Part shown: positions 21,443-64,000 of the stretch, one piece after another
Layout: every line of letters begins with the position of its first letter
Numbering within the stretch: position 1 is the first letter of the stretch
IMG/VR virus record: IMGVR_UViG_3300027782_000025
Coordinates: 210,626 to 274,625 of that record
Strand: one strand, 5' to 3'
DNA: 64,000 bases
The notes under the pieces: model-generated
Database searches by the model: none
Told to the model about the DNA's origin: nothing
The model's input: the letters and a program-made list of their open reading frames with translations, nothing else
Translations under genes and position numbers: made by a program

Positions 21443-22049
21443 CCAGCCTAACGCTACAGCACCGATGCCAAAACCGCCAGCGGTTCTAAGGTATCCGGAA
21501 ATGCTTGGCGAAGACTACTTACCAGCCATTAAAGATACTTTGGCTTACGTTATAAAGCCATATGCTTTAGAAGGCTTATCGGTTATAATATCAAAAGACG
21601 AAAAATCTGACAATATTATGATATTATTTGCCGATTGGTTTGGAAATAAATTAGACTTATTAGAAAAAACGAATAAATTAGTGATAATGGCAGACGCATT
21701 CTTAGCTAACAATGTGCAAATTCTAATAAATTTCATGAAAATGATAAAAGTAAAACAAGCACAATACTTTTTCTCAGGTACAACTTATGAAGAAATGATA
21801 CTGGTCGATATGCAGACCTCTATAAATAAAATGTGCGGACCAGGGATGATTAGAGATTTATTCAGCAAGATAATGAAGACGCAAGAAGTTTTAAAAGTAG
21901 AACCGATCGATGAGAGGGCTATAAGCGCTATAAACACCGGCAATGGTATCTATGAAGGAGATATCATTTTAAAACCTTCTAGATTTAGACAATACCATAA
22001 TCTAGAAAAGGGGCTTTATACTCCGTTATATGTGAAAATAACCAGATGA
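21372..22049 (+). CDS. Hypothetical protein (weak ligase-like motifs)
   Basis: Start uncertain (21372, 21420 or 21465); C-terminal YEGDIILKP...YVKI. Confidence 0.6.
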   Translation: MRRKGSTPSNKEIIPQVRPSGISNQPNATAPMPKPPAVLRYPEMLGEDYLPAIKDTLAYVIKPYALEGLSVIISKDEKSDNIMILFADWFGNKLDLLEKTNKLVIMADAFLANNVQILINFMKMIKVKQAQYFFSGTTYEEMILVDMQTSINKMCGPGMIRDLFSKIMKTQEVLKVEPIDERAISAINTGNGIYEGDIILKPSRFRQYHNLEKGLYTPLYVKITR

Positions 22050-24010
22050 AACTATTTGTAAATAATCACCAAGATATCCAAAAATTAACAGATGCTCAGG
22101 GCAAAGTTGTTCAGGTACGACCAAATCAAAAAATCCTGTTGCCAGATTATTTTGATAAATACGTCACATCTGGGCATTTAGTTCACGCTAGAGCGCCTAC
22201 ATCAGGAACTCGCAGCGCCGCTAGCCACACTAAAAACAGACAGTCAAACAGCCTATTAGAACGAAGAAACAAAAAAACCGAAACTAACATAATAAACCCC
22301 GAAAACAATCCATCGATACCAACGACTAAAAATAATCGCCAAAATATGCAAAGAGCCGAAATCCAAAGGCCGCAAGTACGCAGCCAAAGGCAGAATGCTG
22401 TCAGGCAAAAGAAAATACACACGTCGCCAAGGCAGGTCGATAGCCAAAATAAATTTAAAGGTAAATCTATACCCAATCCAAGGGAGCAACATATTTATGA
22501 TCAATCAGACAATCTGTCTGGAATTATAAACATCAGTAATGATATCGGAGTCGGAATACTATCATATAATAGACAGCAAAGCTTAAAAAGACTAGTTGAT
22601 TCTATTATAAAAAACACTAATTTATCGAAGACCACTATCTTCATAAGCGATGATGGTAGCACAGAACCGGAAACAATAAGTTATCTAAGCAAATTAGCAG
22701 CGACGAACCGATTTTGTATCATCATGAATGATAAGAATTTAGGAATAGCCGGCAATAGCAATCGACTTTTGCAATGTCTCCAAAGATTTAAATACGGCAT
22801 TATTTTAAATGATGATGTTGAAATCACCAGTTCTGGCTGGGAATATTTCTATCCTGACGCCATGCAAATTACTCAATTTAAGCATTTCATATATAGAGAA
22901 AAAAACATATACGGCGCCACCATAGGCGACCCATATAATGTCAAAGGCATAAATCTTTTAAAAAGCGACAATCAACCACAGGGTGCTGTTCTTGCATATG
23001 AGACATCTGCAGTAGAGAAGATCGGATTCTTCAACGAGGCTTATGGGCAGTATGGCATGGAGCATGTTGATTGGTCGACTAAGTTTAATGATTTTAGTCT
23101 ACACGATGTTAATGGATTTTTTGATGTCTATGGTTCGAGTCGTTATTTCTTATTACATAATGAAAAATCATCTGTACCAGAAAGAAGCGAAAAATTGCAA
23201 TTCGCTAGAAATCTTTTCAGAAATCGAGAAATAAAGAAGTATAATCACTCTGAAGATTCTAAAACCGATTCTATTAGCGTTGTAATACCTTATAGGTCAC
23301 AAGACCGATCAGCATCAGTTATTACCGTTATAGATAGTATAAAAGGACAATTATTCCCAACGATCAATATAATATTATCAGAGCACGATCATAAAGCCAC
23401 CATTGATACGACTGCTATTTTACCATCGATATGTCTCCATATTCACGCAGAATCTGAAGAACCATTTAATAAATCAAAAGCTTTCAATGGTGGTGTCGAC
23501 ATAGCAAAAGATGATTATCTTATATTGCATGACGCTGACATGCTAGTACCAAATTATTATGTGTCAGAAGTCTATAAGACTTTATTATTTAACAGTAGTT
23601 GCCATCTAGGGAAAGATGTGAGTTACTATGATAATAATGACACAGACATAATCAATCGTGAAAAGCGTGTGTTCAAGCCGCAGAATTTTGAGCGTTACGT
23701 ATCATACTTTGAAGGTGGATCATTAGCATGTACCAAAAAATATTACAGCGAAATAGGTGGTTTTTATGAGGCCTATTCAGGATATGGCTGCGAAGATTGC
23801 GACTTTTATGCTAGATTAATCGCTGGTGGAAATTTTAAAGATGATCGTCGCATATCGCTTTACCATTTAAACCATCCAAGAAGCGATAAATGGCAAAAAT
23901 TTCACGACCAAAATGTAAAGCTAGAGACTACGCTTAAAACATTATCAAATATTGCAAGAATCGCTGATGCTAAAAATTTATTAATACGAAAAGGATATAA
24001 AACAATATGA
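22046..24010 (+). CDS. Two-domain GT-A glycosyltransferase (GT2 + GT2/GT7C-like) with long basic N-terminal extension
   Basis: Domain 1: GILSYNR, ISDDGS, LNDDV. Domain 2: SVVIPYR, FNKSKAFNGG, LHDADML, GGFYEAYSGYGCEDCDFYARL. Confidence 0.9.
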   Translation: MKLFVNNHQDIQKLTDAQGKVVQVRPNQKILLPDYFDKYVTSGHLVHARAPTSGTRSAASHTKNRQSNSLLERRNKKTETNIINPENNPSIPTTKNNRQNMQRAEIQRPQVRSQRQNAVRQKKIHTSPRQVDSQNKFKGKSIPNPREQHIYDQSDNLSGIINISNDIGVGILSYNRQQSLKRLVDSIIKNTNLSKTTIFISDDGSTEPETISYLSKLAATNRFCIIMNDKNLGIAGNSNRLLQCLQRFKYGIILNDDVEITSSGWEYFYPDAMQITQFKHFIYREKNIYGATIGDPYNVKGINLLKSDNQPQGAVLAYETSAVEKIGFFNEAYGQYGMEHVDWSTKFNDFSLHDVNGFFDVYGSSRYFLLHNEKSSVPERSEKLQFARNLFRNREIKKYNHSEDSKTDSISVVIPYRSQDRSASVITVIDSIKGQLFPTINIILSEHDHKATIDTTAILPSICLHIHAESEEPFNKSKAFNGGVDIAKDDYLILHDADMLVPNYYVSEVYKTLLFNSSCHLGKDVSYYDNNDTDIINREKRVFKPQNFERYVSYFEGGSLACTKKYYSEIGGFYEAYSGYGCEDCDFYARLIAGGNFKDDRRISLYHLNHPRSDKWQKFHDQNVKLETTLKTLSNIARIADAKNLLIRKGYKTI

Positions 24011-24960: not shown

Positions 24961-24961
24961 T

Positions 24962-25606
24962 ATGGCGCTCTTAACTGATAAATTTTTGTTTTTACACATA
25001 CCAAAAACTGGTGGTTCATATATAAGAAAAGTCATCGATCTTATACATATAAAATGGGTTGAAAAAAGCCACCACCATAGCTGTTTCCCTGGATTGTTAG
25101 ATCATTTATCATCGAATGATCTCTTAGGAAAAACCGTTATCTGCTTTATCAGGCATCCATTAACTTGGTATCAATCACGCTGGGCTTTTAGATTGTCGCA
25201 CCAAAGTGGTTGGCAAGGTAATGGTCTTGACCTAGCATGTGGGTCTAATGATTTTAACATGTTCGTTAACAATTGTATAGATTATACCGGTAGCGATAAG
25301 GGTTGGGCATCGTATAAAATGACTAAATTTATCGATAATATACCAAGCGGATTAAAGACCTTTATCGGCAAGCAAGAGAATCTTCGTAATGATCTTATAT
25401 CGGCTCTGATAGAATGCGGAGCGGTTATAGCTGAAACCGAACTGCCGCTATCGCCAAAATTTAACATGTCCTTGAATGATGGTAAACAGTCCCACATTAT
25501 AGCCAAATACGACATAAAGACATATGAGCGTGTAATGCAGTTTGATGGCGAATTTATGAATAAATACTATAAAGATTATAACGTTGACCATAAAATCCTT
25601 TTTTGA
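24962..25606 (+). CDS. Sulfotransferase (Sulfotransfer_2-like)
   Basis: FLHIPKTGGSYI (5'-PSB loop), FIRHPLTWYQSRW (3'-PB), FIGKQENLRNDL. Confidence 0.8.
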   Translation: MALLTDKFLFLHIPKTGGSYIRKVIDLIHIKWVEKSHHHSCFPGLLDHLSSNDLLGKTVICFIRHPLTWYQSRWAFRLSHQSGWQGNGLDLACGSNDFNMFVNNCIDYTGSDKGWASYKMTKFIDNIPSGLKTFIGKQENLRNDLISALIECGAVIAETELPLSPKFNMSLNDGKQSHIIAKYDIKTYERVMQFDGEFMNKYYKDYNVDHKILF

Positions 25607-27590: not shown

Positions 27591-27591
27591 T

Positions 27592-28161
27592 TTAGAATTT
27601 CTTCTTTAAAGTAGCTCCGGGGAAGTTTTTAGTAACATCTTGAGATATCTTTTTACCTTCGTCGCTTATCTTTTTTCTTACTTCTTTTAGCTGGCTTTTC
27701 GATACACCATCGGTGTTAGAAAGCATCGCCACCCAACCGCTAGGCTGTAATGCCAACATTGTTTTAGCTGTGTCTTGGGTGCTCTGCGCCAGAGATTTTA
27801 AATCAGTCTTTAATAGATATCTAGGCTCGATAGCATAAAGAGCTGATGTGATAATGCTTGGTGCATATGTTTTTAGCTCGGTCATGGATTTTTTTAAATC
27901 TTTGTACTTATTTGCGTTTTTCTTGTCGGAATCTAATATTTTTAAAAAGCCTGAGATAAAGTCATCACTAATTGTCGACCACGTATCAGAGCTAGGTTGC
28001 TTGAAATATGATCTCAATAGTTTAGCTGGCTCAGAGTCTTTATATCGGTCATCATTAAAAAGTATATCGATTAGCTGGCCAAATATCTGGCTGATATTTA
28101 AGACAGGAGTGCCGCCGCTAGAGATACTACCAGCAGCTTCATAAATATTTAATAATTTCAT
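27592..28161 (-). CDS. Hypothetical protein (possible head-associated protein)
   Basis: 189 aa, starts 1 nt after the gmd stop; N-terminus MKLLNIYEA. Confidence 0.7.
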   Translation of the reverse strand: MKLLNIYEAAGSISSGGTPVLNISQIFGQLIDILFNDDRYKDSEPAKLLRSYFKQPSSDTWSTISDDFISGFLKILDSDKKNANKYKDLKKSMTELKTYAPSIITSALYAIEPRYLLKTDLKSLAQSTQDTAKTMLALQPSGWVAMLSNTDGVSKSQLKEVRKKISDEGKKISQDVTKNFPGATLKKKF

Positions 28162-28162
28162 T

Positions 28163-29239
<1,077 letters not shown>

Positions 29240-29524: not shown

Positions 29525-29525
29525 T

Positions 29526-30689: not shown

Positions 30690-31472
30690 ATGGCTATTTT
30701 TGGACCAGCAGATCTACCCTCTATATTAAAACTACGTTCTGAACCAATGAAAAAGTATATCCTGACCAAATTAGGATATCCAAATGTAGATGTAGAGATA
30801 CAAGAAGATCAATTCGAAACGATTTGGAGAGTGGCTGGAGATTTTATAGCTAGCTATTTCCCCAGAGAGCAGAAATTAGCTGTTTTTTGGACCAACCCAT
30901 TGCAACCAACATACCCTCTTCCAGAAGACGCTTATTGGGTCCAAGAAGTGCATTGGGACCCAGCAACAACCAGAATAAACGATGTATTTGGGGCTGAAAG
31001 CTTTTTATTTAATGTCGGGCAGGTGTCCGGCATACAAAATATGCTTTTAGATTACCACCTTCTTCAAGCATATAGAAAATTCTCCCAAAAAATACTTGGC
31101 ACTGAAGGCCACTGGGAAGTGATTAACGAAAACAATAAATTTACACAAGGTGATTCATTAAGTTCTAAAGATCAAAAAATACGGTTATATCCGACACCAA
31201 AAGGCGCTTTCCCAGTGACTGTTCTTTACATCCCTGTCGTCAATAGTTTTAGAAGCCCGCAAGCTAGACAGCTATGCTATGATATGATGCTTGCTGAAGC
31301 TAAAACCTCGCTGGGTGCTGCAAGAAGAAAAATCTCAGGATTACCAACACCAGATGGTGGTACAATATCTTATGATGGTGATGCTCTCATGAACGAAGGC
31401 ATCAAAATGAAAGAAGAGATAATTAAATCTGCTATTGATCTCGGTGAACCATATGGAGTATGGCTATGGTAA
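30690..31472 (+). CDS. Neck/head-completion protein (T4 gp13-like)
   Basis: YILTKLGYPNVDVEIQEDQF, RLYPTP, AKTSLGAARRKISGLPTPDGGTISYDGDALMNEG pattern. Confidence 0.68.
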   Translation: MAIFGPADLPSILKLRSEPMKKYILTKLGYPNVDVEIQEDQFETIWRVAGDFIASYFPREQKLAVFWTNPLQPTYPLPEDAYWVQEVHWDPATTRINDVFGAESFLFNVGQVSGIQNMLLDYHLLQAYRKFSQKILGTEGHWEVINENNKFTQGDSLSSKDQKIRLYPTPKGAFPVTVLYIPVVNSFRSPQARQLCYDMMLAEAKTSLGAARRKISGLPTPDGGTISYDGDALMNEGIKMKEEIIKSAIDLGEPYGVWLW

Positions 31473-54100: not shown

Positions 54101-56914
54101 GCATTTATAGCGATCAAAGATGATAATACACTTTGGGGCGTCGGTAAAGGTTACGAACCACCAAGCGGTCAATTATCCGGCTACCATCGCTATGGTGGCG
54201 GTATCGATGCTTACTTTTCTTTTCTTACTCAGATCGGCACCGACACTGATTGGATAAGATGCTTCTCTACTCAATATGGCGCATCATTTGCTATCAAAGA
54301 TGATGGCACTCTTTGGGCGACAGGGTTAAATGCTTTATCGCCATCGCAGAGTTATAGCATACTTGGTTTCAACCCTGCTACAACCATCGGCTTGATGTAC
54401 TATACTCAAGTCGGGACAGATACTGACTGGAATAATATCGTTAGTATGTCGAGCACAATTGGGCTAAAGAGTGATGGGACTGTTTGGGGGATCGGGCAGA
54501 ATCAATACGGCCAATTAGGCCAAGGATCCACAAACGCTGTCGGGCCACTGTTTACTAAATTAAACAATGCGACCGATTGGACCCAAATTGCTCAGATGAA
54601 TTATGGCACTGCCTTGTTGGGCTCCTTGGTGCCTGCTCCGACACCTACTCCAACACCAACACCTACCCCAGCTTCTTATTATGTTTATGGCTCTGGTAGA
54701 AATCAAGACCATCAACTTGGTATAGACACATTTGGTGCTGATTTGAATAACATGACATTGTTGACTAGTGGCAACGCTTCATCAGTCACAATATCGAATA
54801 CTTCTAGTATGCTATTGATGAATGATGGTACGCCAACACCGACACCCACGCCCACACCTACACCCACGCCCACGCCAACGCCATCTGCTAACACAGGTGC
54901 GATTTTTGGTTTTGGTTTAACCTCGAATTCAATGAATGTAAGCATCACTAACTTAGTTAATAGCTCTGGAGTCGTAGCAGCAGATGTTACCTATATCGGA
55001 CTAGTAAGGTCAAGTATAGCGGCTGCAGCTATTGGTGGCGGTAAGGCGATTTTTGCTTATGGTGTAACTGACCAATGGTTACCTATGGTTACATTTAATA
55101 CTGTCACAAATACCGGCGATTTAGAAACAGCACAAGACCTAGTGGGAACACGCAGAAAGAATCTAGCCGCCGCCCCTTATGGTCAAGGTCAAGCAGTATT
55201 TGCCTTTGGTGTAAATGAATCAGCGGTGGCGGTTTCAATTTCTAACAAAGTATCATCGCTCGGTGTTATTGAGACAGATAGCTTCGCTGTAGGAACATCT
55301 AGATCGCTTTTGGCAGCTGCCGGTTATGGTGCAGATAAAGGCATATTTAGTTATGGGCTAACTACTGCCGGGGTTGTAACTGTCACGAATTTGGTAAGCA
55401 ATCTCGGTGATATTATTGTCGACAGTGCCGGCGTCGGTACTGCTCGGTCAGGGCTAGCGGCTTCATCTTATGGCAGCGGTAAAGCGATATTCGGCTTTGG
55501 TAACACACAGGCATATTTATCGATCACCAATTTAATAAACGAAAATGGCGTAGTAGCAACCGATACTGCTGGCGTCGGCACAGAACGTAGTAACCTAGCA
55601 GCAGCCGGCTACGGGTCAGGCAATGCGATCTTTGGTTATGGTTATAGCGGAAGCGGTTCATATGTCTCACTAAGCAATCTGGTTTCGAATGTTGGTGTGG
55701 TAGCTACAGACACTGCTGGCATTGGAATGGCACGAGTAAACTTAGCAGCTGCTAGTCTTTTAGCTGCCCCTACACCTAGCCCAACGCCGACTCCAACGCC
55801 TACACCAACGCCGACTCCAACGCCAACGCCTACACCAACGCCAACATCGACACATTGTTTATCACAGATCCAGAGAATAGCAACTCCCAATGGCATGTTT
55901 GCGCATGGAAATATAGTATCTCGTGACCAAAAATATGTCTATGCTAAAATGTATGGTTCTCAAACCGGCTTTGTCCAAGGTGTGGCTCAATATAAGATTA
56001 CAGCTTTAGGAACATTAGAATATTTATCTTTATACAGTACCGGGGGATGGGATATATATGAGTCGCAATCTGGGACACATGTCTATACTATCGATAACCA
56101 AAACGATACAATAGCGATTCTATCCAGAAATACCACAGATGGCACACTGGGGACACCGACTATATTGGCGACACCATACCCACCTGGTGAATTAATTGGT
56201 TCCGCTGATGGCAAGCACATTTATATAACTAATATCAACCGCGGTCCGGCGCCATATATGGCTAGAATAATGATATATGATATCAATAGCACTAACGGGA
56301 TGTTATCATACAATAACACGATAGATATTCCAGACTCATCACCAATCGCATTTTCAATGACTTTATCGCCAAGTGGTCTATATTTTTATGCTATAACTGG
56401 CGCTCCTTATGGTGTCACTAATGCTGGTAACAAACTAAACGTGTTCATACGGAATACGACCTCTGGGACGCTGATTCTAATCGATGCATTAGATATACCC
56501 GCAAATACCAGCGATATCCTGATATCATCGGATGGTCTATATTTATACACGATGGGCTTCCAGCAAAGTAACGGGATTAATAGTATCGAAATAAATACAT
56601 ATGCCATCGGTATAACAGGCGGTTTGACATCAACTGGGACCACATATGTTATGGAAGCCAACGGTGGTGTTGGTAAAACACAAATGATAGAAGCAACGGA
56701 TGGGACAGCCATCTATTGTACAAGAGGAAAATCTGGGATAGTAATCGATAAAAACCCAACGACAGGCATAATAACCGGAAGCACGGAGATTTTAAACTTA
56801 GTGCTTGGTGGAAGCGTGACTATAGCAGCTAAAAACTCAGATGTTAGATTTATCTATGTCGGTGAATATAGCAATAAGTCTATAGTGACTCTAAGCACGC
56901 TTTGTCCACCATAA
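45149..56914 (+). CDS. 3921-aa giant modular fibre/appendage protein
   Basis: Mtd_N-like anchor, WP...DGG domain, FG-GAP, several RCC1 blocks (DGTLWxxGxNxxGQLG), STDGINW BNR-like block, lactonase-like propellers, DTAGVGTAR repeats, PT linkers. Confidence 0.93.
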   Translation: MSIKIQVRRDTASNWLSVNPILSSGEIGLETDTLRFKYGDGTLKWEDLPYPSIGGGSVQSISAGYGLLGGIITSQGEINVDGNIALDVLSEQALANKAFKNKSGTFTNIFVDNGILNLDLSASNNFIVNFEEDIDSFTTSNNPENGMAFVITLVLNITTGSAVTWPSNIIWPDNVFPTSSAVGTTDIFKLLTIDGGSSFYAYIVGQGYNTNSIPPNFLDEFLSPSDGKPGDGFGISAAISKDGRTAVVGSIYNQYSGAAYVFRRSDNRWLQIAKLLGEDNESAFGTSVAISEYGDVIAVGAPQEGTNDIGAAYIFTEANDSWLNNKIIPEDSADITAKNLVRLFGSSVSLSNDGTLLIVGAPDFDVPDNQNTGAVYVFRSDGPPTPPPPPINNYYIYGTGKNTDCELGLGDKNNRALFTLIKSATPLQIAVGKNYALYIKHDGTLWATGKTGLGLPSDPMNQSYRNFIQLGSDYWLDVKANNKGTTLLINADGSLWGCGYNQDGNLGIGITTNVNDLIMLDDNNWRAISCCSSSSYGIKSDGTLWSWGDNTYGQLGHGDLYPRLYPAEVGVDAGTFGTNVTGGTGGTGGTGGTGGTGGTGGTNPVYTDWVYISQGSSAHHVFAIRNDGTNATQEDGTLWAWGKNNLYQLGLNDTIDRSTPTRVNSEFWIKVEAGTDSSAGITSAGELFVWGYNSYGELGLNDVVVRPIPTRNAFFPAFFSDLSFNGHTLIALDTIGYMYGAGFNYYGQLSQGFFSANDPSNQIRMLTQITKSGGWIIATILDSLIASRDSLLPPPVAGPTPTPVTPTPTPTSTPTPTPTPTPTPTPTPAECATVWTGRTLPGLSIGTIAASPDKIVITTADGGTAAVSTDGINWSLSSIPSTTWVDAMYANNLFLVSGYDAVNVGTQRLISSPDGINWTPIALPIGIAGKMASGNSIYLIFSVWGTSFLRSNDLITWLPGTLPTPIDWICAQVIHNGVYFLATSSNSDTYIISTDGINWTVSSFPSSTSRNWQATTFGLGLFVAINYSANPPLSLTSSDGVTWVSNTMPLVGKYSRVIFGNGFFLALIEESTYGALSYDGRTWSTVTLPYSSSWKNGVYAHDMFIVSDLGNNQNYITSPCKKTPTPTPSGTYTWHYVISGLNTRGQLGLSDIADRDQFIAQSWNTLPVNSNDFPCISHGYDHTMMVKTDGSLYAYGNNDRGQLGLPTSMGAYLNVPVLVSAGPYHTVSCGYKYSIAVAANGDIFATGANESGQLGVGDLTDKMGLTQLVGYKAYIGTDPKVGATPCVATGKTATVMVLLIRMTSGDLIPRYYSWGLNQSGQLGQSNSDYSYQTSTPSEIANLNASTQPAVYGGILNHHFFAIALDSDYNHIFCGWGNNDRGQLGNALINIDNPMLGAVSGWSSDSIKIFNVAIGQSFTAFIAQTGIGSPASLLISGANDRGQIGVPVGNSTNIFTEVPFPVNYTSWDKISAGADFIYATARQTGSRNTFGWGDNTYGQLDGGPTAPNSYISPTLLDARESETLNTNHLGFGFGGYWAYYTDTPSASACAIRLKYNGVSTRIGSNGLSFAVGDVITVAGIGGLGAWSSVDGVYKIKDFDNTNGMIVECVSPGCFNGWNTASGSLAAPIVMGRAITSNGGAVVTSTATTGNVPWEVNFYCNVTPTPTPTPTPTPTPTPTPTPSAGGSAFAAGAAGLISAKLGVITPKFTKFSPDNTSWKFAAVDSFYGAFLIKSDGTLWGSGYNTYGQLGTGTNKTVTDMVQIGTDNDWKFITADAASTIAMKDDGTIYGAGYNDSGTLGLGDRLPRMFFTLINSDTWLTIKTYRHQTVGVRSDGKLFIWGLFSDVFYSSNNINSPPRDVPFELVDAGSGYIKADCGYNTLYAIKSDGSLYGMGENGSAQIMMPPSTIIESMTKLTSSENWVDIAASDQALLLLNDIGEIFSFGIGEVLGTGKRYTPNGLEKIDKDFKYTKVFATTNVAGALKTNKRLMVWGNNYYNALSLALVNKISTPQISRPDNMYDHVALSATFSIAIGAVNLTPTPTPTIPNVLYVNGRNIYGNLATGDTIGRGSFYEILRDNAKAAAASESACAVVKSDGTLWTAGTNFNGILGQGSNNMLKQYTLMQVGTDTNWVNVESNSLSAFAAYKENGDIYVWGQSGVPDLIPFNASNPGIFTSPTLVALADISKIVYLYITDLIVIKDNGSLWAQGNNSNGNLGLGANATINTLTQVNAGPFKTSRTSYAYNGSNGMYIKTDGTLWATGANGLQTPCSGFLGTGDTSIVNVLTKIGTDTNWDKVTLIWDYGAYAIKTDGTLWGCGTQILNQNNTANFGSSLTFVQIGTDTDWHDFAGTSYQELYIIKNDGSLYAAGNNLLNNFTGPIASINRINDPMTFNYVSSGLWDNGNFFVSGILVPPGPTPTPTPTPTPTGCAISSLTLTQLAPANYNSYGIAISPDDKNIYTSSTSSPPNSLPIVNIYQRNMFNGSLTLMQNISTLVNPISICVSPDGKFVYTVIDIDAKIFIYSRNATTGVLTDVGSVATETGYLYLNTTILLQPREMCISPDGKNAYVICSRGDSPNNAMIDVFTRDIVTGLLTHFETVEGDIGPNSYSICISPDGLDVYVTDYDSVNGVRLFSRNASTGSLTFNGSIASGLDPHGIIVSPDGLSVYVTSVNNGGLNDQISIYTRDAATGLLTDAGSIATGDKPYQLSISDDGYSVYTANKTGQKISVYSRASDGSLTADGSVSTSGQYPYRSVVSHDGKNVYMTNLDSNHISVFARTCGSAPPPNTNLLVSGMRTSSIELGVPASYVPAVPNNYTFYGVSNVATWDGVFGNTNVLFATKGGELWACGRNNFGQLGIGNTTNQAELVQVGNGTDWSYVVTSGVSTLALKTDGTLWGTGYNSFGELGLGHTNQVNTFTQVGVETDHNNNIAMSTTGSSYVYRSGILYATGNNANYQLGTGNTINLSTFNAMDAQSWYNGPWMMAALPSAFIAIKDDNTLWGVGKGYEPPSGQLSGYHRYGGGIDAYFSFLTQIGTDTDWIRCFSTQYGASFAIKDDGTLWATGLNALSPSQSYSILGFNPATTIGLMYYTQVGTDTDWNNIVSMSSTIGLKSDGTVWGIGQNQYGQLGQGSTNAVGPLFTKLNNATDWTQIAQMNYGTALLGSLVPAPTPTPTPTPTPASYYVYGSGRNQDHQLGIDTFGADLNNMTLLTSGNASSVTISNTSSMLLMNDGTPTPTPTPTPTPTPTPTPSANTGAIFGFGLTSNSMNVSITNLVNSSGVVAADVTYIGLVRSSIAAAAIGGGKAIFAYGVTDQWLPMVTFNTVTNTGDLETAQDLVGTRRKNLAAAPYGQGQAVFAFGVNESAVAVSISNKVSSLGVIETDSFAVGTSRSLLAAAGYGADKGIFSYGLTTAGVVTVTNLVSNLGDIIVDSAGVGTARSGLAASSYGSGKAIFGFGNTQAYLSITNLINENGVVATDTAGVGTERSNLAAAGYGSGNAIFGYGYSGSGSYVSLSNLVSNVGVVATDTAGIGMARVNLAAASLLAAPTPSPTPTPTPTPTPTPTPTPTPTPTSTHCLSQIQRIATPNGMFAHGNIVSRDQKYVYAKMYGSQTGFVQGVAQYKITALGTLEYLSLYSTGGWDIYESQSGTHVYTIDNQNDTIAILSRNTTDGTLGTPTILATPYPPGELIGSADGKHIYITNINRGPAPYMARIMIYDINSTNGMLSYNNTIDIPDSSPIAFSMTLSPSGLYFYAITGAPYGVTNAGNKLNVFIRNTTSGTLILIDALDIPANTSDILISSDGLYLYTMGFQQSNGINSIEINTYAIGITGGLTSTGTTYVMEANGGVGKTQMIEATDGTAIYCTRGKSGIVIDKNPTTGIITGSTEILNLVLGGSVTIAAKNSDVRFIYVGEYSNKSIVTLSTLCPP
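46889..46951 (+). repeat. In-frame 9-nt tandem repeat (ACTGGCGGC) x7 encoding (Thr-Gly-Gly)7
   Basis: Six perfect units plus one near-perfect unit. Confidence 0.97.
47543..47632 (+). repeat. (Pro-Thr)n linker-encoding repeat
   Basis: CCN-ACN codon pairs. Confidence 0.9.
50129..50188 (+). repeat. (Thr-Pro)n linker-encoding repeat
   Basis: ACN-CCN codon pairs. Confidence 0.9.
54830..54883 (+). repeat. (Thr-Pro)n linker-encoding repeat
   Basis: ACN-CCN codon pairs. Confidence 0.9.
55769..55846 (+). repeat. (Pro-Thr)n linker-encoding repeat
   Basis: CCN-ACN codon pairs. Confidence 0.9.
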
Positions 56915-56953: not shown

Positions 56954-59900
56954 ATGACGACAAGCAACAGTTTATTATTAGCCGGCGGTAATTTTTACGG
57001 CCAGCTAGGAGCATCAAGTACTCTTAAACCAACATTTGAATATTGGGCTTTTTCTAGTAAGTATGGTCCTTGGGCTAAAGCATCAACATCAGACAGCGGT
57101 CATACACTATTGATTAATATTGACCAGACATTGTGGGCGTCAGGGAATAACGAATACGGGCAGCTGGGGATTGGCACCACCGGCGCTGGCTATACACAAT
57201 TTACTAAAATTAATGATACTATACAATGGATGGACGTTGCTACTTCAAACTGGGGTTCTTATGGCCTCAGTACAGTAGGCAATTTATATATTTGGGGAAG
57301 ACAGGCAAGCAATAATTTTAATCCCATTGTTTCCATCACAGAGTTAGTTGTTTTAGATTATGTGGGCGGTAAGGTAAAATTCAAAAGCCTTGCTACCGGC
57401 AGTGGTACAAATCACATGCTTTTGATCGACAATGATGGTCAACTGTGGGGATGGGGTTCAAATACACGAGGACAATTAGGCTTAGGTGATACTTCAGTGC
57501 GCATAAATCCTGTTTTGATAAACGCAAATGAATGGCTATCTGCTGCAGTCGGAGATTCTTTTTCTATAGTATTAAGGAAAGATAACACACCATGGGGCAC
57601 TGGTGCTAATGATAGTTTTCAGTTAGGCCAAGGCTCATTCGACTCAAATGATAAAACAGTCTTGACAGCAATAAATACAACATCATCATCTTCTAAGATC
57701 ATTACCCAAATCGCTGCAGGAACAAAGAGTGCCCTTGCTCTAGACAACACTGGGCAGGTTTATGGCTGGGGTGGTAATACTTATGGCGAATTAGGCCTAG
57801 GACATAATTTAAAAGTGCCTGATGCAGCACTTATCCAGAACCTGCCAGGACCAGCAAGCTATATAGCTATTAAAGACCATTCTATTATAGTAGTAAGCAA
57901 CGAAATGCCAACTCCTACACCATGTGTGGCTGGAGAATTAATTATCGCCGGCACAGTGGCGACGGCCGTTAATGCCTACGATTTAGCGATATCAAGTGAT
58001 CAGAAGAATGTCTATGTGGTTCATTTAACCGGAGACATAATATCTATCTATGATCGAAATATAACCACTGGCGCACTTACAAGTGCAGGGACCATAGCCA
58101 CAGGCGAATCATCTACAGCTGTTATATTATCAAACGACGGTATCAATGTCTATGTGGTTAACTCTGCCGGCCAAACAATTTTTATCTATAATAGGAATTT
58201 AACCACTGGCGCACTTACCAGCGCCGGAACCATAGCGACAGAAGATGCACCAAGAGACATAGTCGCATCAAATGATGGTAAAAACGTCTATGTGGTTAAT
58301 AGTCAAAGCAATACAGTCTCTATTTACGATAGAAATTTAACCACTGGCGCACTTACCAGTGCTGGAACAATAGCCACTGGTGATAGTCCATTTAATATAG
58401 CGATATCAAATGATGACAAGAATGTTTATATAAATGAATCTGCTGATGAATTAGTGATTTATAATAGAGATTTAACCACTGGCTCACTTACCAGCGCTGG
58501 AACCATAGCCACGGAGCAGGGTAGTTGGGGTATAGCGGTGTCTAGCGATGATAAGAATGTTTATGTAGTGAATGGTGCAAATGGTAGTAGCAACACTATC
58601 TCGATCTATATTAGAAATTTATCAACTGGCGCACTTGCCAGCGCTGGTACCATAGCCACTGGTACTGGTTCACTCGGGATAGCTGTACCAAATGATGGCA
58701 AGAATGTCTATGTTGTAAACTCTGTTAGTAACACACTTTCGATTTATAGCAGAAATACTACTACTGGTGCTCTAACAATCGCTAGCACTATAGCCACTGG
58801 TTCAACGCCATACAATGTTATCGTGTCAAGCGATAGCAGACATGTTTATGTATGTAACGAGACGGACGACATAATTTCGGTCTTTACCACATGTGAATCA
58901 ACACCTACTCCAACACCTACTCCAACTCCAACTCCAACTCCAACACCAACACCAACACCAACACCAACACCAACACCAACACCAACACCAACACCATGTG
59001 TTGTTGGAGATTTAATAAGCGCAGGCACGATAGCTACGGGAGAATACCCAGCTAGTTTAGCTCTGTCTATCGATCAAAAGAATATTTATGTTACTGGCAA
59101 CTACGCAATTTCTATTTATAACAGAAATTTAACGACTGGCGCACTTACCAGCGCTGGGACCATAGCCGCAACATCGGGAACAGTTGATATAGTCGCAACG
59201 GTCGACAATATTAGCGTTTATGCTGTTAGTTCTGACAGTAATTCGATATTAATCTATAATAGAGAATTGACTGCTGGGGCACTTACAAACTTTGGAACCA
59301 TTGCTACTGGTACTGGACCGCTGAGCATAACTGCGACGATTGATAATATGAGCGTATTTGCGGCTAATTCTGGAGACGATACGCTTTCGGTATACGACAG
59401 AGATATAACCACCGGCGCACTCACTAATATTGGAACTTTAGCAACTGGAGACACGCCTCGGGACTTGGCAGTATCTAATGACGGGAAGAGCATTTATGTG
59501 ACTAACCAAAATAACAATTTAATATCAATTTATAGCAGAGACTTAGTTACTAGAGTAATCACCAGCATCGGCACTATCGCAGCAGGTAGCGTGCCCTGGG
59601 GTGTAGTAGTATCTAACGATAATGATAATGTTTATGTGGTGAATGGTGGTAGCAACACAATCTCGATCTATAACCGAAACTTAACTACTGGCACACTTAC
59701 TAGCGCTGGAACCATAGCTACAGGCGATAACCCGCTCAAAATAGCTATCTCAAATGATGATACAAAAGTTTATGTGACTAGTTATGGCATAAATTCACTT
59801 TCGATTTATAATAGAAATATAGTCACCGGCGCTTTGACTAGCGTCGGTTTTATAGCCGCCGGCACTACACCATACACAGTAGTAGTATCAAATAATAATA

Positions 59901-60883
59901 AAAACGTTTATGTGACTAATTCAGGTGCAGACACAATCTCCATTTTTGCTGTTTGTGAGTTAACTCCAACACCAACCACTTCAGTCGGTGCCGTATTTGC
60001 TTTTGGTAATAATAGTTCGAATATAATCAACCTAGTTTCAGATATCGGTATTATCACTGAGGATATAAGCGTTGTTGGTACAGCTAGATATTCGGGGGCT
60101 GCGGCATCGTTCGGGACCAGCGGAACTGGCAAAGCGATCTTTGCATATGGTGTTAACGCTAGCACCCAGTCTGTTTCTTTATCGAACATCATATCCAGTG
60201 GCGGAACTGTGGCTTATGATACAGCTGGAGTAGGCACAGCAAGATATGGCTTAGCAGCTGCAGGATACGGAGCCGGCAAAGCACTATTTGGGTTTGGCGA
60301 TGCTGGAAAATATTTTCAGTCATACATTCCAGTAAGTATAACTAATCATGTCACTGACAATGGCATAATATCTTCAGATACCATAGGAGTTGGAACAACG
60401 AGATACGGCTTAGCTGCGGCTTCTTATGGCACAGACAAAGCAATATTTGGCTTCGGATTTAAAAACTCTCCTAATTTACATCTCTCTATAACTAATTTAG
60501 TATCGAATACTGGTGTTGTCTCGACCGACACGACTGGTGTTGGAACTGGTCGTCGTGATCTCGCCGCCGCTGGCTACGGAGGAGACAAAGCAGTATTCGG
60601 AGGCGGTAATGGTGATTATAATTCTGGTTCATTTGGCACCTATAATCTTGTCGATAATAATGGCATAGTTTTAAACAATAACACATTCGCGACATTCAGG
60701 CAATGGTATGGTTCAGCCTCTTCTTTTGGGCAATCTGGAGCAGAGCAAGCTATCTTTTCTTTTGGTTTTGTTCCTAACACCCAGACATCATTTACGCTGA
60801 TAATAAATAATAATGGAATACCAAGCAGCGAAGTCGCTCAGATCGGATCGGAGAAGCATAGTGCGTCTGGTGCTAAGTTATAA
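56954..60883 (+). CDS. 1309-aa appendage protein: RCC1 block, two lactonase-like propellers, DTxGVGTAR repeats
   Basis: GNNEYGQLG and GSNTRGQLG; [11 protein letters not shown]...ISIYxRNLTTGALTSAGTIATG blades; AIFGFG...GVGTARYGLAAAGYG repeats. Confidence 0.92.
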   Translation: MTTSNSLLLAGGNFYGQLGASSTLKPTFEYWAFSSKYGPWAKASTSDSGHTLLINIDQTLWASGNNEYGQLGIGTTGAGYTQFTKINDTIQWMDVATSNWGSYGLSTVGNLYIWGRQASNNFNPIVSITELVVLDYVGGKVKFKSLATGSGTNHMLLIDNDGQLWGWGSNTRGQLGLGDTSVRINPVLINANEWLSAAVGDSFSIVLRKDNTPWGTGANDSFQLGQGSFDSNDKTVLTAINTTSSSSKIITQIAAGTKSALALDNTGQVYGWGGNTYGELGLGHNLKVPDAALIQNLPGPASYIAIKDHSIIVVSNEMPTPTPCVAGELIIAGTVATAVNAYDLAISSDQKNVYVVHLTGDIISIYDRNITTGALTSAGTIATGESSTAVILSNDGINVYVVNSAGQTIFIYNRNLTTGALTSAGTIATEDAPRDIVASNDGKNVYVVNSQSNTVSIYDRNLTTGALTSAGTIATGDSPFNIAISNDDKNVYINESADELVIYNRDLTTGSLTSAGTIATEQGSWGIAVSSDDKNVYVVNGANGSSNTISIYIRNLSTGALASAGTIATGTGSLGIAVPNDGKNVYVVNSVSNTLSIYSRNTTTGALTIASTIATGSTPYNVIVSSDSRHVYVCNETDDIISVFTTCESTPTPTPTPTPTPTPTPTPTPTPTPTPTPTPTPCVVGDLISAGTIATGEYPASLALSIDQKNIYVTGNYAISIYNRNLTTGALTSAGTIAATSGTVDIVATVDNISVYAVSSDSNSILIYNRELTAGALTNFGTIATGTGPLSITATIDNMSVFAANSGDDTLSVYDRDITTGALTNIGTLATGDTPRDLAVSNDGKSIYVTNQNNNLISIYSRDLVTRVITSIGTIAAGSVPWGVVVSNDNDNVYVVNGGSNTISIYNRNLTTGTLTSAGTIATGDNPLKIAISNDDTKVYVTSYGINSLSIYNRNIVTGALTSVGFIAAGTTPYTVVVSNNNKNVYVTNSGADTISIFAVCELTPTPTTSVGAVFAFGNNSSNIINLVSDIGIITEDISVVGTARYSGAAASFGTSGTGKAIFAYGVNASTQSVSLSNIISSGGTVAYDTAGVGTARYGLAAAGYGAGKALFGFGDAGKYFQSYIPVSITNHVTDNGIISSDTIGVGTTRYGLAAASYGTDKAIFGFGFKNSPNLHLSITNLVSNTGVVSTDTTGVGTGRRDLAAAGYGGDKAVFGGGNGDYNSGSFGTYNLVDNNGIVLNNNTFATFRQWYGSASSFGQSGAEQAIFSFGFVPNTQTSFTLIINNNGIPSSEVAQIGSEKHSASGAKL
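58901..58996 (+). repeat. (Thr-Pro)16 repeat including perfect (ACACCA)9
   Basis: Perfect hexamer run 58943-58996. Confidence 0.95.
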
Positions 60884-61542: not shown

Positions 61543-61621
61543 TATTATTAAATATAAATTTATTAAATCTTAACCGACAAAGATAAATAGTGATGGATTT
61601 ATCAGGTTGGAGTGAATATAA

Positions 61622-64000
61622 ATGGCATGGAAACAAGAGGCTATAATCTACCCCGGACGTAACGCTCCTCCAGCGCCAGTGCCGACACCGACACCGACTC
61701 CAACACCAACCCCAACCCCAACACCTTTCAGTGCTCTAAAATATATCGCTACGGCTGGAAAAATTGGTGGGTTCGACAGTCTTACACAAAAAGCCTGGAT
61801 AGCTAATAATCTAAATAGCTGGGTGCCTTTCGACCTGCCAGTTTCAGGCAGTTGGACCAACAGCATTTATGGTAATGGCAGATTTGTACTGGCCGATCTT
61901 AATACCAAGCGTATATCTTTATCATCCACAGACGGTATAAATTGGACGCAAGGAATAATACCGCCAGATTTTATATCAACTAACCCAAATCCGCCAAGAC
62001 CATTATTTGTCTACGCCGCATCAGCATATTCCAACGGTATCTTCATCGTCATGAGTGATGATGGTAATTCTTGCATAAGATCTACCGATGGCATAAATTG
62101 GGATTACATAATTATAAATACCGACAGACCAACCGGACCATCATCATATACCGGTATTGTTAATATTGCTGTTAATAACGTAAACACGATTGCTTGTAGT
62201 GACGGCTTTGGTGGAGTATTATACTCTACCGATAACGGTATAAATTGGACTTGGAAAAGGATACTCGGAGATGCTAATGATATTTACGGGTGGTATGGTA
62301 TCGCTTATGGAAAAGGCAAATTCGTTTTAATCCAAAATGGTGCGTCTTCTGGCACCAACACCAGAGGCAAAACCGCCATAACTAGCGATTTTATTTCTTT
62401 CACATATGGCAATATACCTAACGGTGGCTGGTATTTCGCTGGTTATAATCCTATCTTTGAAAAATATTACGCTTCTAGTTATAGCCCACGTAGCATTTAT
62501 TCTAGTGTGGATGGTTTAACTTGGTCTTTAGAAATATCTGAAGTATTAACCTCTAGTCCTTATGTCTTTGATGGTAATAATTTAATCGCGCCAAGCTATG
62601 TTTATTTGCCGCCTAATGGTGTATGGAAATATTTCAATATAGATCCAAACAATAATAGTAATGATTTTCTCGTCTCCGCTTCTTATACTGCCCCAACTCC
62701 TGCACCGACCCCAACACCAACCCCAACACCGACACCGACTCCTACACCGACACCGACACCGACTCCTACACCGACACCAACTCCTACACCGACACCAACG
62801 CCGACTCCAACGCCAACACCTACACCAACACCTACTCCTACACCAACACCTACTCCGGCATTTTCTGGTTCTAGCGTTTACATAGGAAATTCTACACAAA
62901 CACTTTCGATATTTTCGCGCGACGCTAGCACGGGGCTATTGTATGGTACATCTACAATTGCTTCAGGATCGTCAAGCGGTGCAACTATCAATGGTGTTTG
63001 TGTTTCCGCTGATGGTACAAACGTTTATGCCCTTGATGTTGATAACACTAGAATTTTAATATTTAATCGCGACATCAACACTGGAGAGTTAACAGCTAAT
63101 GGTATAATTAGCACAGGTAATGGTCTGTCTAGAGAAATTGCTATTTCTGCTGACGGCACATGCGTTTATGTGGTTAAAGTAGTTACGAGTAATGTCGAGA
63201 ATTTAGCCTTACTCTTCAATCGGAACATTAGTACAGGGGCATTATCAGCTGGGACTACAATAAGCACCGGAAACGATCCATCAGGAATATGCATTTCATC
63301 TGATGGCTCTAGTGTATATGTGGTTAATCAAACTTCTGAAACGGTTTCAATATTTTCTCGAAATACTAGCACAGGAGTATTAACTTCCAATGGCACAGTA
63401 CCCACAGATGTAAATCCTTGGAAAATCATTATTTCAGCAGATGGCGCAAGCGTTTATGTTCTTTATACAGACGCGAAAATGATAATTTTTTCTCGCAACA
63501 CTAGCACAGGAGCATTAACCGACAATGGAACGATTACATTATCGACTGGTATCAATCAGTATACATATGGTTTTTGCATTTCTGTAGATGGAAAAAACGT
63601 TTATGTGACTAATAATTATTTTAACGAAGTATTAATCTTTGATCGCAACACTTCCACAGGAGGGCTTACTTCTAATGGTAAATTAACCTTAGCAGGCTAT
63701 AATTACCCACAAAAGATTTGTATTTCAGCCGATGGGAAAAATGTTTATGTGGTTTGGTATGGTTCTAATAAAACGTCCATCTTAGACCGAAACACTAGCA
63801 CAGGGTCATTAAGCGAAAGTAGCATAATAGCGTCAGGAGATGGATTTTTAGGAATTTGCATATATCCTTTATCTAATTCACCAACGCCAACGCCAACGCC
63901 AACACCAACACCAACACCAACACCAACACCAACACCAACACCAACACCAACACCAACACCAACACCAACACCAACACCAACACCAACACCCACACCAACA
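61622..64000 (+). CDS. Modular appendage protein, 3' truncated (absent from the ORF track)
   Basis: ATG 61622 (GGAG upstream) opens [25 protein letters not shown]..., then STDGINW BNR-like repeats, a long PT tract, an SADGxxVY propeller and a PT tract; I saw no stop up to base 64000. Confidence 0.88.
62693..62857 (+). repeat. Longest PT linker-encoding repeat (55 codons)
   Basis: CCN-ACN codon pairs, degenerate at third positions. Confidence 0.93.
63881..64000 (+). repeat. (Pro-Thr)20+ repeat including perfect (CCAACA)15, runs off window
   Basis: Perfect hexamer run 63899-63988. Confidence 0.95.

Follow-up and report, generated by a model that had tools for sequence, protein, structure and literature searches.

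An uncultured freshwater lineage of jumbo phages carries a set of soluble sugar-chain enzymes that is inherited clade-wide, and whose distribution is dissociated from that of the Pro/Thr-rich (PT) linkers in the giant fibre proteins encoded nearby. We propose, with a probability of roughly 0.4, that these genes specify a clade-core cytoplasmic assembly line for a fucose-containing, possibly also Kdo-containing glycan, which would be sulfated in this subclade and attached to an acceptor that the phage itself makes, most probably proteins of the virion. The window analysed here, 64,000 nucleotides in length, is the terminal part of a 275-kb IMG/VR jumbo-phage record from lake water, approximately 70% complete, and belongs to a clade with a split DnaE-type polymerase and genomes of up to 408 kb.

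Organization of the glycan operon

Positions 22046-27305 form a single operon, in which start and stop codons of successive genes overlap or abut throughout, and which encodes four glycosyltransferases (GTs) with five GT domains plus one sulfotransferase-like protein (Table 1). A Kyte-Doolittle scan detected no transmembrane segment in any cluster protein. These overlaps and the family matches uphold a preliminary description that had read, from the letters alone, a contiguous operon of four GT-like genes and a sulfotransferase (the latter being a likely assignment), lacking membrane segments, accompanied by gmd and located just before the virion region. A neck and tail-fibre module does follow; upstream of the operon are genes for SSB, RusA and an RNA-ligase-like protein, gmd is convergent with the operon, and in relatives an NAD-ligase gene is positioned between the GTs and gmd. 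An additional ORF, 27253-27609, was rejected as spurious because relatives carry stops in it. Reads from a lake metatranscriptome cover the glycan genes patchily at a depth of 2-5, a weak signal that could be DNA carry-over.

Table 1. Genes of the glycan cluster, sugar-nucleotide supply and virion module in the window.
Feature	Position	Strand	Basis and remarks
KdsB-like CMP-Kdo synthetase	9063..9779	+	PF02348, 124 bits; outside the region first described
Dual GT-A glycosyltransferase, 654 aa	22046..24010	+	Pfam Glycos_transf_2 (E 6e-20), Glyco_tranf_2_2, Glyco_transf_7C
GT1-like/CgeB-like glycosyltransferase, 317 aa	24007..24960	+	Pfam Glyco_trans_1_2, E 7.6e-10
Carbohydrate-sulfotransferase-like protein, 214 aa	24962..25606	+	5'-PSB and 3'-PB PAPS-binding motifs
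GT-A glycosyltransferase, Glyco_tranf_2_5 family, 297 aa	25603..26496	+	Pfam, E 4.5e-11
DUF4422-like putative GT-A glycosyltransferase, 270 aa	26493..27305	+	ESM Atlas features and structural neighbours
189-aa protein	27592..28161	-	Follows gmd on its strand; place in glycan system uncertain
GDP-mannose 4,6-dehydratase (Gmd)	28163..29122	-	TIGR01472, 456 bits (cut-off 415)
gp13/head-tail-adaptor-like neck protein	30690..31472	+	phrog_211; start of virion module
1768-aa fibre protein	32057..37363	+	Lactonase and RCC1 beta-propellers, 4 PT linkers
Three smaller tail-fibre genes	42163-42738, 42722-44491, 44501-45136	+	Mtd_N N-termini; no PT linkers
3921-aa fibre protein	45149..56914	+	Mtd_N N-terminus, 8 RCC1-like propellers, lactonase, FG-GAP domains, 8 PT linkers
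1309-aa RCC1/lactonase propeller protein	56954..60883	+	One PT linker, 38 aa
ORF running off contig end	61622..64000	+	3 PT linkers; contig ends within (ACACCA)n array

The first gene of the operon encodes an enzyme of composite layout, with a conserved 45-aa beta domain at its N-terminus, a polycationic, disordered linker spanning ~95 aa (net charges in 22 homologues range from +11 to +22), GT-A domain 1 with SDDGS and NDD motifs, and a Glyco_transf_7C-like GT-A domain 2 with an HDAD motif. Its DxD motifs are invariant in the homologue alignment. More than 440 full-length homologues were found, solely on phage-sized contigs (≤354 kb) and always full length; in L040/L065 and G015/G024 the protein is fused with the product of the next GT gene. 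Foldseek searches with an AF2 model (pLDDT 82.7) returned K4CP, LARGE1, PmHS2 and CHSY3 as top PDB matches of both domains (E 1e-17 to 1e-10, at TM-scores of 0.26-0.31), and the top PDB match by sequence was K4CP as well (2z86, E 4e-5).

The remaining GTs are smaller. The GT1-like protein has no PDB sequence match in a profile search, and of 63 related loci, 52 have its gene beside that of the dual GT; the Glyco_tranf_2_5 gene is syntenic in 32 loci and the DUF4422-like gene in 30. The DUF4422-like product has no Pfam match, and its assignment, like that of the sulfotransferase, is based on motifs and embeddings rather than curated thresholds: it scores 0.96-0.98 for DUF4422-like features in the ESM Atlas, where its best match has DUF4422 and Glyco_tranf_2_5 clusters as structural neighbours.

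The product of 24962-25606, which matches no Pfam or NCBIfam family, is likely a carbohydrate sulfotransferase. It scores 0.98 to viral Atlas clusters with PF03567, its PAPS motifs HxPKxGG and RHPxxWYQSxW are invariant in 18 homologues, and its top PDB profile match, heparan-sulfate 6-O-sulfotransferase (E 0.007), aligns exactly on both motifs. Of 24 related records, 17 have the gene, as do 2 of 6 complete ones.

These two proteins raise the possibility that the dual GT is a co-polymerase making a sulfated, glycosaminoglycan-like chain that does not decorate a protein but acts unattached, inside the cell or once it has lysed, perhaps as a DNA mimic or matrix. Like K4CP of E. coli K4 (a chondroitin polymerase), PmHS2 of P. 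multocida and human LARGE1, the phage enzyme has two GT-A domains per chain, each with a DxD motif; the polycationic segment could tether a polyanionic product, the heparan-sulfate 6-O-sulfotransferase motifs align with the sulfotransferase profile, and the chlorovirus hyaluronan synthase offers a precedent. We nevertheless regard such a polymer as very unlikely. UDP-glucose dehydrogenase was absent from the 5 genomes searched, so that no gene for UDP-GlcA supply was found; nor was an export route; and 4 of 6 complete relatives lack the sulfotransferase. The structural likeness is generic to two-GT-A proteins, with low TM-scores, and may reflect just the scarcity of solved examples, and there are differences in layout: the two domains stand in the opposite order to those of K4CP, and only the phage protein has the N-terminal beta domain and the polycationic linker.

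Sugar-nucleotide supply and the nature of the acceptor

A deoxyhexose arm, part of the glycan first envisaged, is supported by Gmd, which 19 of 24 related records and all 6 near-complete relatives encode, together with a GDP-L-fucose-synthase-like SDR encoded at genome positions 153319-154365. The Kdo component envisaged with it finds a basis in the KdsB-like cytidylyltransferase gene, which belongs to the sugar-nucleotide supply: all 13 PDB matches of its product are KdsB, cellular homologues at 42-47% identity bear the name CMP-KDO synthetase, and the gene is also present in G021 and G025. The 189-aa protein beside Gmd matches no family and has a weak orthologue (26%) in the same place in G025.

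Such enzymes might instead serve to remodel the host envelope, one of two alternatives named in the preliminary description, with soluble phage GTs acting on undecaprenyl- or lipid-A-linked host intermediates, fed by phage-boosted GDP-fucose and CMP-Kdo, and host machinery exporting the products. An LPS or capsule altered in this way could, for instance, exclude superinfecting phages or keep progeny from adsorbing to debris. Gmd, the Fcl-like SDR and KdsB are classical enzymes of LPS and capsule precursors, and DUF4422 is another classical LPS and capsule family, which counts against the assembly line proposed here; O-antigen and capsule loci typically hold DUF4422, Glyco_tranf_2_5 and GT2 genes; bacterial O-antigen GTs are mostly soluble or peripheral too; and cyanomyoviruses carry LPS gene sets. 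We consider this reading somewhat unlikely, however. Searches of 8 records (6 of them ≥97% complete) found no Bac_transf, Glycos_transf_4 or Wzx flippase; neither a transferase for initiation nor a flippase nor any further membrane component came to light in them, and the block is core and syntenic through a deep clade rather than a variable island. Members of the dual GT family are confined to phages and are always full length, and a host-specific lipid-linked acceptor sits badly with conservation across presumably different hosts. Since the enzymes are soluble, are accompanied by no lipid-carrier or export gene and are inherited vertically across phages with presumably different hosts, the acceptor is most likely made by the phage itself.

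Dissociation of the cluster from PT linkers

The virion module starts with a neck protein that is 65-76% identical in relatives and whose homologue in L001 matches Phage_T4_gp13. It includes four proteins with Mtd_N tail-fibre N-termini, many PHROG tail-fibre matches and beta-propellers of RCC1, lactonase and FG-GAP types. The well over a dozen P/T-rich linkers reported in the fibre genes are real: about 16 are spread over four giant beta-propeller proteins of the window, and 84 (TP)4 matches were observed in the DNA versus 0 in 100 shuffles. PT linkers occur also in four giant ORFs beyond the window.

The preliminary description had interpreted the cluster as a device for coating these mucin-like linkers with a deoxyhexose- or Kdo-containing, possibly sulfated glycan. 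What is supported of this is a coherent soluble toolkit for building glycans; the specific connection to PT linkers is not. Cluster and linkers do coexist in this genome (G000) and in its two closest relatives (G001 and G002), the fibre module adjoins the cluster, the amino-acid sequence of the linkers is maintained with mixed synonymous codons, and secreted cellulases of bacteria carry O-glycans on their PT linkers. However, co-occurrence ends there: at least 35 other relatives, six of them 89-100% complete, keep the glycan block with 0-1 (TP)4 matches, which argues that PT linkers were not what the cluster evolved to serve. T-rich linkers are missing altogether from the complete relatives G025 and G019, and where two of the PT-linker proteins have orthologues, these bear poly-proline linkers instead. 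Conversely, many unrelated viral genomes have long PT linkers, and of 9 such genomes that are complete, 4 have neither a GT2 nor a GT1 gene, so that PT linkers need no such cluster. Cellulase linkers, moreover, receive their glycans outside the cytoplasm from membrane-bound GT-C enzymes, a type that this phage lacks. Judged from these distributions, the glycan cluster did not arise as an adaptation to the linkers, and their O-glycosylation as its primary function is distinctly improbable.

The block itself behaves as an inherited unit. The arrangement of the two GT2 domains, GT1-like, sulfotransferase, Glyco_tranf_2_5 and DUF4422-like genes is syntenic in ~30 of 63 IMG/VR loci, with identities of 27-55%, as are also seen for SSB and RusA; all of its genes except that for the sulfotransferase are shared with both complete relatives G025 and G019, of which only G025 has the sulfotransferase.

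Placement amid replication and repair genes would also suit a DNA-directed or early function, and base glycosylation had been named as an alternative. In such a scheme the GTs would glycosylate phage bases against restriction, with the conserved, disordered linker of the dual GT (charge +15) tethering the enzyme to DNA. As in T4-type DNA glucosylation and 5hmC/5hoC glycan pathways, GT genes lie among DNA-metabolism genes, and phage GT-A and GT-B enzymes attach mono- to trisaccharides to 5hmC (bioRxiv 10.1101/2023.12.21.572611). The idea is weakened because the defining ThyA-family hydroxypyrimidine synthase was not found in G000 or 5 complete relatives, and ThyX and dUTPase/dCTP-deaminase indicate canonical dTTP synthesis. 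A Tet_JBP search gave no match, with the control of the same search silent. Five GT domains with GDP-fucose, CMP-Kdo and a sulfotransferase go far beyond the complexity of any known DNA glycan, and the GT folds resemble polysaccharide polymerases and beta-4-GalT, not JGT or T4 BGT. We therefore give DNA hypermodification the lowest weight among the readings, as highly unlikely.

Relationship to known systems

Capsid glycosylation in chlorovirus PBCV-1 is similar in its virus-encoded GDP-mannose 4,6-dehydratase, fucose-synthase-type SDR and several soluble GTs, and in a core machinery independent of host export pathways. In contrast, the present system belongs to a tailed phage of a bacterial host, adds a sulfotransferase and KdsB, and is related in sequence only through shared enzyme families. 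Multi-domain GT-A enzymes of Megaviridae are the closest viral structural matches of the dual GT, and clusters for fibril glycosylation in Mimiviridae likewise join sugar-nucleotide synthesis and GTs for surface appendages; the likeness to the phage GTs is at fold level, and Mimiviridae are giant viruses of eukaryotes whose sugars differ.

Among GenBank phages, GT-A domain 1 comes closest to GTs of mycobacteriophages from clusters that include the Che8 type, although identity is just 24-27% and extends over a single domain. As far as Che8-type virion glycosylation is outlined in PMC12619734 (citing Freeman et al. 2023), it also uses GT2-family enzymes encoded at one end of the structural region, but with 2-3 small GTs, without sugar-nucleotide or sulfation genes, and with glycans on capsid and tail-tube C-termini rather than linkers. 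The same paper describes 'moraphages', a freshwater jumbo-phage lineage with four core GT orthogroups whose target is not known; unlike the clade studied here, these are defined by a polymerase of family B and by genomes no larger than 307 kb.

A proposed model for glycan assembly

Returning to a cytoplasmic assembly line, we infer its sugars, sulfation, acceptor and timing as follows. Gmd and the Fcl-like SDR would supply GDP-L-fucose or a close 6-deoxyhexose, the KdsB-like enzyme would activate Kdo, and PAPS would come from the host. Five soluble GT domains, contributed by the dual GT-A enzyme (resembling bifunctional co-polymerases) and the CgeB-like, Glyco_tranf_2_5 and DUF4422-like GTs, could then build an oligo- or polysaccharide, which in this subclade the carbohydrate sulfotransferase may sulfate in a final step. 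One of the best PDB matches of the dual GT (K4CP, LARGE1 and PmHS2) is a polymerase whose substrate is a glycan already linked to protein. Virion glycosylation in general would be the most plausible target, and the acceptors would probably be structural proteins that receive their sugars before the particle is assembled or while it is, in the manner of chloroviruses, mimiviruses and mycobacteriophage Che8. In the lineage of the window itself, PT linkers that arose recently in the giant fibres may have been recruited as additional acceptors, which would make them, at most, a late and lineage-specific substrate of this pathway.

Results

A block of 6-9 genes encoding five glycosyltransferase (GT) domains, a likely carbohydrate sulfotransferase, a predicted GDP-fucose pathway and predicted CMP-Kdo activation forms a core module that has passed vertically through a large clade of uncultured jumbo phages. 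The member studied here, G000, is a single linear IMG/VR virus record of 274,625 bp with a GC content of 40%, about 70% complete by CheckV estimate; the window is its final 64 kb, and sequencing runs that contain a near-verbatim stretch of its glycan cluster are freshwater and lake metagenomes. A search for near-identical DNA among GenBank phages returned no match, and the best polymerase matches reach only 22-29% identity. Neither the likely sulfotransferase (ST) nor the GT1-like protein has a tblastn match in 50,697 GenBank phage records, so a cultured relative that would place these genes in context is lacking.

Features of the window and selected features elsewhere in the record (genome coordinates where marked)
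Feature	Position	Strand	Basis or remarks
Replication/recombination module	first 20 kb		DnaE-type polymerase in two ORFs, UvsX, DnaB, SSB, RusA
Split DnaE-type DNA polymerase	1726-3126 and 4393-7116	+	three small ORFs between halves
Clade-specific ORFan	8137-9066	+	overlaps start of KdsB-like gene
KdsB-like cytidylyltransferase (predicted)	9063-9779		PF02348, PDB matches
RNA-ligase-like protein (up225)	21372-22049	+	225 aa, AF2 model
Dual GT, two GT-A domains	22046-24010		Pfam: Glycos_transf_2, Glyco_tranf_2_2/Glyco_transf_7C
GT1-like protein	24007-24960		Pfam: Glyco_trans_1_2, CgeB-like family
Probable sulfotransferase (ST)	24962-25606		PAPS motifs and embedding neighbours
GT2_5	25603-26496		Pfam: Glyco_tranf_2_5
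DUF4422-like protein	26493-27305		embedding and structural neighbours only
Hydrophobic ORF	27253-27609		118 aa, between the two arms
Gmd	28163-29122	opposite to operon	TIGR01472; followed by a 189-aa gene without assigned function
Small secreted Cys-rich ORF	29265-29525	+	86 aa; signal peptide, 8 cysteines
134-aa protein	29621-30024	+	61-67% identity in relatives
Hairpin/terminator	30054-30092		strong, 17-bp stem
Neck and tail-fibre module	~30 kb to window end		gp13/adaptor-like, four Mtd_N proteins, many PHROG tail-fibre matches
Last fibre ORF, truncated	from 61622		contig end (63866-64000) in pure (ACACCA)n PT-coding array
Small GT2	genome 89583-90257	-
Two giant ORFs with PT linkers	genome 92987-101259	-
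Fcl-like SDR (predicted)	genome 153319-154365	-	NF047922

Across 63 related IMG/VR loci, fetched from parent contigs of up to 408 kb, the gene order of dual GT, GT1-like, ST, GT2_5 and DUF4422-like proteins, preceded by the RNA-ligase-like gene, is seen repeatedly, with identities (27-55%) in the range of the adjoining SSB and RusA. The GT1-like gene occurs in 52 of the loci, and those for ST, GT2_5 and the DUF4422-like protein in about 30 each. Whole-record searches recovered gmd from 19 of 24 related records and from all six near-complete ones; the corresponding figures are 17/24 and 2/6 for the sulfotransferase, and 11/24 and 4/6 for the Fcl-like short-chain dehydrogenase/reductase (SDR). 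An ORF-by-ORF comparison with G025 (354 kb) and G019 (356 kb, with terminal repeats), both of them complete, showed that 111 of the 305 ORFs of G000 occur in each of these relatives, including every glycan gene except ST, which G000 shares with G025 only. From this distribution we conclude that the block is ancient, has been passed on vertically and belongs to the core of the clade.

The five genes form a contiguous operon, as the preliminary description had it, and are tightly packed, with start and stop codons that overlap or abut. Its report of four GT-like genes also stands, while the accompanying sulfotransferase is likely on motifs and embedding, without a curated-family match. Equally in line with that description, which had seen no obvious signal or transmembrane segments in the GT-like proteins, hydrophobic segments are absent from the cluster proteins. 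A possible membrane component, the 118-aa hydrophobic ORF that separates the two arms, was discarded, as it contains stops in relatives and is not conserved as an ORF. In an alignment of 18 ST homologues, H12-P14-K15-G17-G18 and R64-H65-P66...Q71-S72 are invariant, and the motifs that they form, HxPKxGG and RHPxxWYQSxW, correspond to the 5'-PSB loop (PKxGxT/S) and the 3'-PB motif (RxPxxRxxS) of PAPS-dependent sulfotransferases. Profile comparison gave heparan-sulfate 6-O-sulfotransferase (HS6ST, 5t03) as the best PDB match, with an E value of 0.007 and an alignment that covers both PAPS motifs, and the embedding neighbours are viral clusters carrying PF03567 (Atlas feature score 0.98). No Pfam or NCBIfam model matched the protein, even at E 10. 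Together, these sequence features make a sulfotransferase the likely identity of this protein.

The 654-aa dual GT scores 72 bits against PF00535 (cut-off 23.3) and 43.7 bits against PF02709 (cut-off 23). Each of its two domains combines a GT-A fold with a DxD metal/nucleotide-sugar motif; neither motif, NDD (255-257) or HDAD (495-498), varies among 22 homologues. The AF2 model (mean pLDDT 82.7, above 85 for both GT-A domains) places an N-terminal beta domain at residues 1-45 and a disordered stretch at 51-138 ahead of the GT-A domains. The sequence of this disordered linker (22187-22480, residues ~48-145) is not conserved among 22 aligned homologues, but its net charge of +11 to +22 is kept and the remainder of the protein is about neutral; a putative role as a polycationic tether is suggested. 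Over both domains, the PDB matches are led by bifunctional polymerases, namely K4CP, LARGE1, PmHS2 and CHSY3 (E 1e-17 to 1e-10), and K4CP is the best match by sequence as well. Motifs, model and structure matches thus indicate that a single chain carries two active GT-A domains, as in glycosaminoglycan (GAG)-type co-polymerases. Because TM-scores to the PDB matches are low (0.26-0.31) and solved structures of two-GT-A proteins are few, the likeness to polymerases is a lead that falls short of proof of such activity. GAG-type co-polymerases add two sugars in turn, one of them usually a uronic acid, to build a polymer of repeats; UDP-glucose dehydrogenase was not found in five genomes, so that the phages themselves offer no support for a uronic acid. 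The best viral structural matches are multi-domain GTs of Megaviridae, and domain 1 finds its best GenBank-phage sequence matches in mycobacteriophage GTs (24-27% identity). Metagenomes contain more than 440 full-length homologues, on contigs of up to 354 kb among the matches listed. At 9956-12907 of loci L040 and L065 (records G015 and G024), a single 983-aa ORF joins the dual GT in frame to the GT1-like protein, which gives Rosetta-stone support for a functional link between them.

Gmd passes the equivalog cut-off of TIGR01472 (455.7 bits vs 415). The SDR encoded elsewhere in the genome scores 258 bits against NF047922, under the 500-bit equivalog cut-off, with the next model at 99 bits; we label it Fcl-like (GDP-L-fucose synthase-like) because this model is the best by far although the score stays below the cut-off, and it could yield another GDP-6-deoxyhexose. 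With Gmd it would form a GDP-fucose-type pathway. The mention of Kdo in the preliminary description is explained by a CTP_transf_3 cytidylyltransferase (PF02348, 124 bits, cut-off 22.6) for which 13 of 13 PDB matches are KdsB, with E values down to 5e-32; it is probably a KdsB-like CMP-Kdo synthetase, its specificity for Kdo being predicted. Translationally coupled to this gene is a clade-specific ORFan with 140 homologues and no Pfam match, PDB profile match or named homologue, in which only an N-terminal GSGxxG (Rossmann) motif is recognisable and which may be a further sugar-nucleotide enzyme. A GT8/DUF1647 protein and another small GT2 are also encoded elsewhere in the genome. APS kinase, considered as a source of PAPS made by the phage, was found only in a distant relative, G032, which is without the ST family seen in G000. 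In that 395-kb record the APS kinase gene (215 bits, G032:C1:357150-357596) lies 4 kb from an Fcl-like gene (361022-361957).

The giant proteins of the fibre module are built of RCC1-like, lactonase-type and FG-GAP beta-propellers joined by proline/threonine-rich (PT) linkers, whose abundance the preliminary description had recorded correctly: about 16 occur in four ORFs of the window, where the (TP)4 codon pattern has 84 matches vs none in shuffles. Four giant ORFs elsewhere in the genome also have them, including a 4418-aa protein with ten. A few runs are pure (ACACCA)n arrays, at one of which the assembly probably broke. Many others mix synonymous codons, which indicates that it is the amino-acid repeat that is maintained. 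Between 35003 and 59002, many linkers are flanked by cysteines (...TPTPTCFD, CRPTPTP, CNVTPTP, ...TPCVV), a pattern that suggests disulfide-capped domain boundaries.

It had been proposed that the phage glycosylates these linkers with a deoxyhexose- or Kdo-containing, possibly sulfated glycan, and co-occurrence of glycan cluster and linkers among relatives was named as a test. Co-occurrence fails in both directions. Scanning the whole records of 37 relatives gave (TP)4 matches only in the two closest (dual-GT identity 86% and 52%); the other 35, six of them 89-100% complete, have the cluster with 0-1 matches. G025 and G019 contain no T-rich linker, their largest ORFs being 1601 and 1455 aa, and orthologues of two PT-linker proteins of G000 have poly-proline or PPS linkers at the corresponding sites. 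Giant PT-linked propeller fibres thus appear to be a recent innovation of this lineage. Conversely, IMG/VR is rich in long (TP)7 runs, with at least 120 stretches, and among nine unrelated records that combine such runs with a completeness of 90% or more, four are without any GT2 or GT1 gene. The main argument for glycosylation of PT linkers is thereby removed: the underlying observation was sound, and the connection drawn from it is without comparative support, although the linkers of this particular phage may still be glycosylated. The small GT2 was considered, and not retained, as a dedicated linker GT: no homologue of it occurs in 23 relatives, and the closest relatives are too fragmentary for this comparison. 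It lies 3 kb from the two PT-linker-bearing giant ORFs and could be a lineage-specific addition.

Immediately upstream of the operon, and translationally coupled to the dual GT, lies the conserved gene for up225. This protein was excluded as a glycan carrier or adaptor by its AF2 model (pLDDT 88), which has the nucleotidyltransferase fold of RNA/DNA ligases, similar to T4 Rnl2/REL1 (TM about 0.5). Lysines K153 and K201 are invariant, and on the model it is assigned to the nucleic-acid module. A lake metatranscriptome contains a 905-nt contig, at depth 15, that spans the small secreted ORF and the gene for the 134-aa protein and ends at the hairpin/terminator. The glycan genes are represented there by short pieces at depth 2-5, compatible with low expression or DNA carry-over. 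No class motif that would place the cluster as early or late emerged from scanning for sigma-70 promoters, from testing for 8-mers enriched upstream of 86 genes or from a search for TATAAAT (T4-late-like).

Discussion

Virus-encoded glycan machinery is well documented in chloroviruses, mimiviruses and a few mycobacteriophages, and the module described here is of this known kind; its interest lies in its clade-wide core status and in the pairing of a likely sulfotransferase with a dual GT-A enzyme. To our knowledge, hardly any work exists on such machinery in tailed phages whose hosts are Gram-negative or environmental, and sulfated glycans have so far been described for no phage. We found no literature report of a phage sulfotransferase in a glycan cluster of this type. 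For the moraphages, another freshwater jumbo lineage, a 2025 paper likewise reports four GT orthogroups among the core genes, with no target assigned (PMC12619734). They possess a family-B polymerase and smaller genomes, in contrast to the DnaE-type polymerase of the G000 clade, and, given these differences in polymerase type and genome size, we do not assign G000 to that group.

Core status argues for a role in the basic phage life cycle over an accessory one. We rank first an acceptor made by the phage itself, with a probability of roughly 0.4, as it agrees best with the solubility of the enzymes, with a system that does without export machinery and with vertical inheritance deep in the clade; PBCV-1 and mimivirus provide precedents for glycosylation of this type. 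The glycan could instead be attached to the phage DNA, given that the block sits among replication genes and that the dual-GT linker is cationic, although we place this at a low level of likelihood. The glycans known from phage DNA depend on a pyrimidine that has been hydroxylated, for which either a ThyA homologue or an oxygenase of the TET type is responsible (bioRxiv 10.1101/2023.12.21.572611; PMC13326640). In the second route, TET/5mYOX acts together with a C5-methyltransferase. The ThyA family (PF00303) was not found in G000 and five complete relatives, in a search whose control was positive in 10 of 14 genomes, and the presence of ThyX together with dUTPase/dCTP-deaminase points to canonical dTTP synthesis. 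The search for Tet_JBP (PF12851) gave no match, with a positive control that was silent too.

Remodelling of the host envelope is a further alternative to a phage-made acceptor, and it draws on the fact that the precursor enzymes are classical enzymes of LPS and capsule synthesis. Against it, the initiating transferase and flippase families PF02397, PF00953 and PF01943 were not found above cut-off in eight records, the cluster proteins have no transmembrane segments, and the module is core and not island-like; host genes could, however, substitute for the missing functions. A free sulfated polymer is also possible.

We consider it improbable, yet worth stating, that the clade makes a cytoplasmic, sulfated, polyanionic fucose/Kdo glycan, polymerised by a phage-specific dual-GT-A co-polymerase with a conserved polycationic tether. 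If this were true, it would be the first case of a phage-derived glycan that is sulfated and GAG-like, and it might serve as virion decoration or as a free DNA mimic or matrix. Our comparisons also carry a caution, in that PT-rich fibre linkers are an unreliable marker of phage-directed glycosylation. If virions of this clade are coated with the product of the module, consequences in lakes would extend to the stability and adsorption of the phages as well as to grazing and immune recognition.
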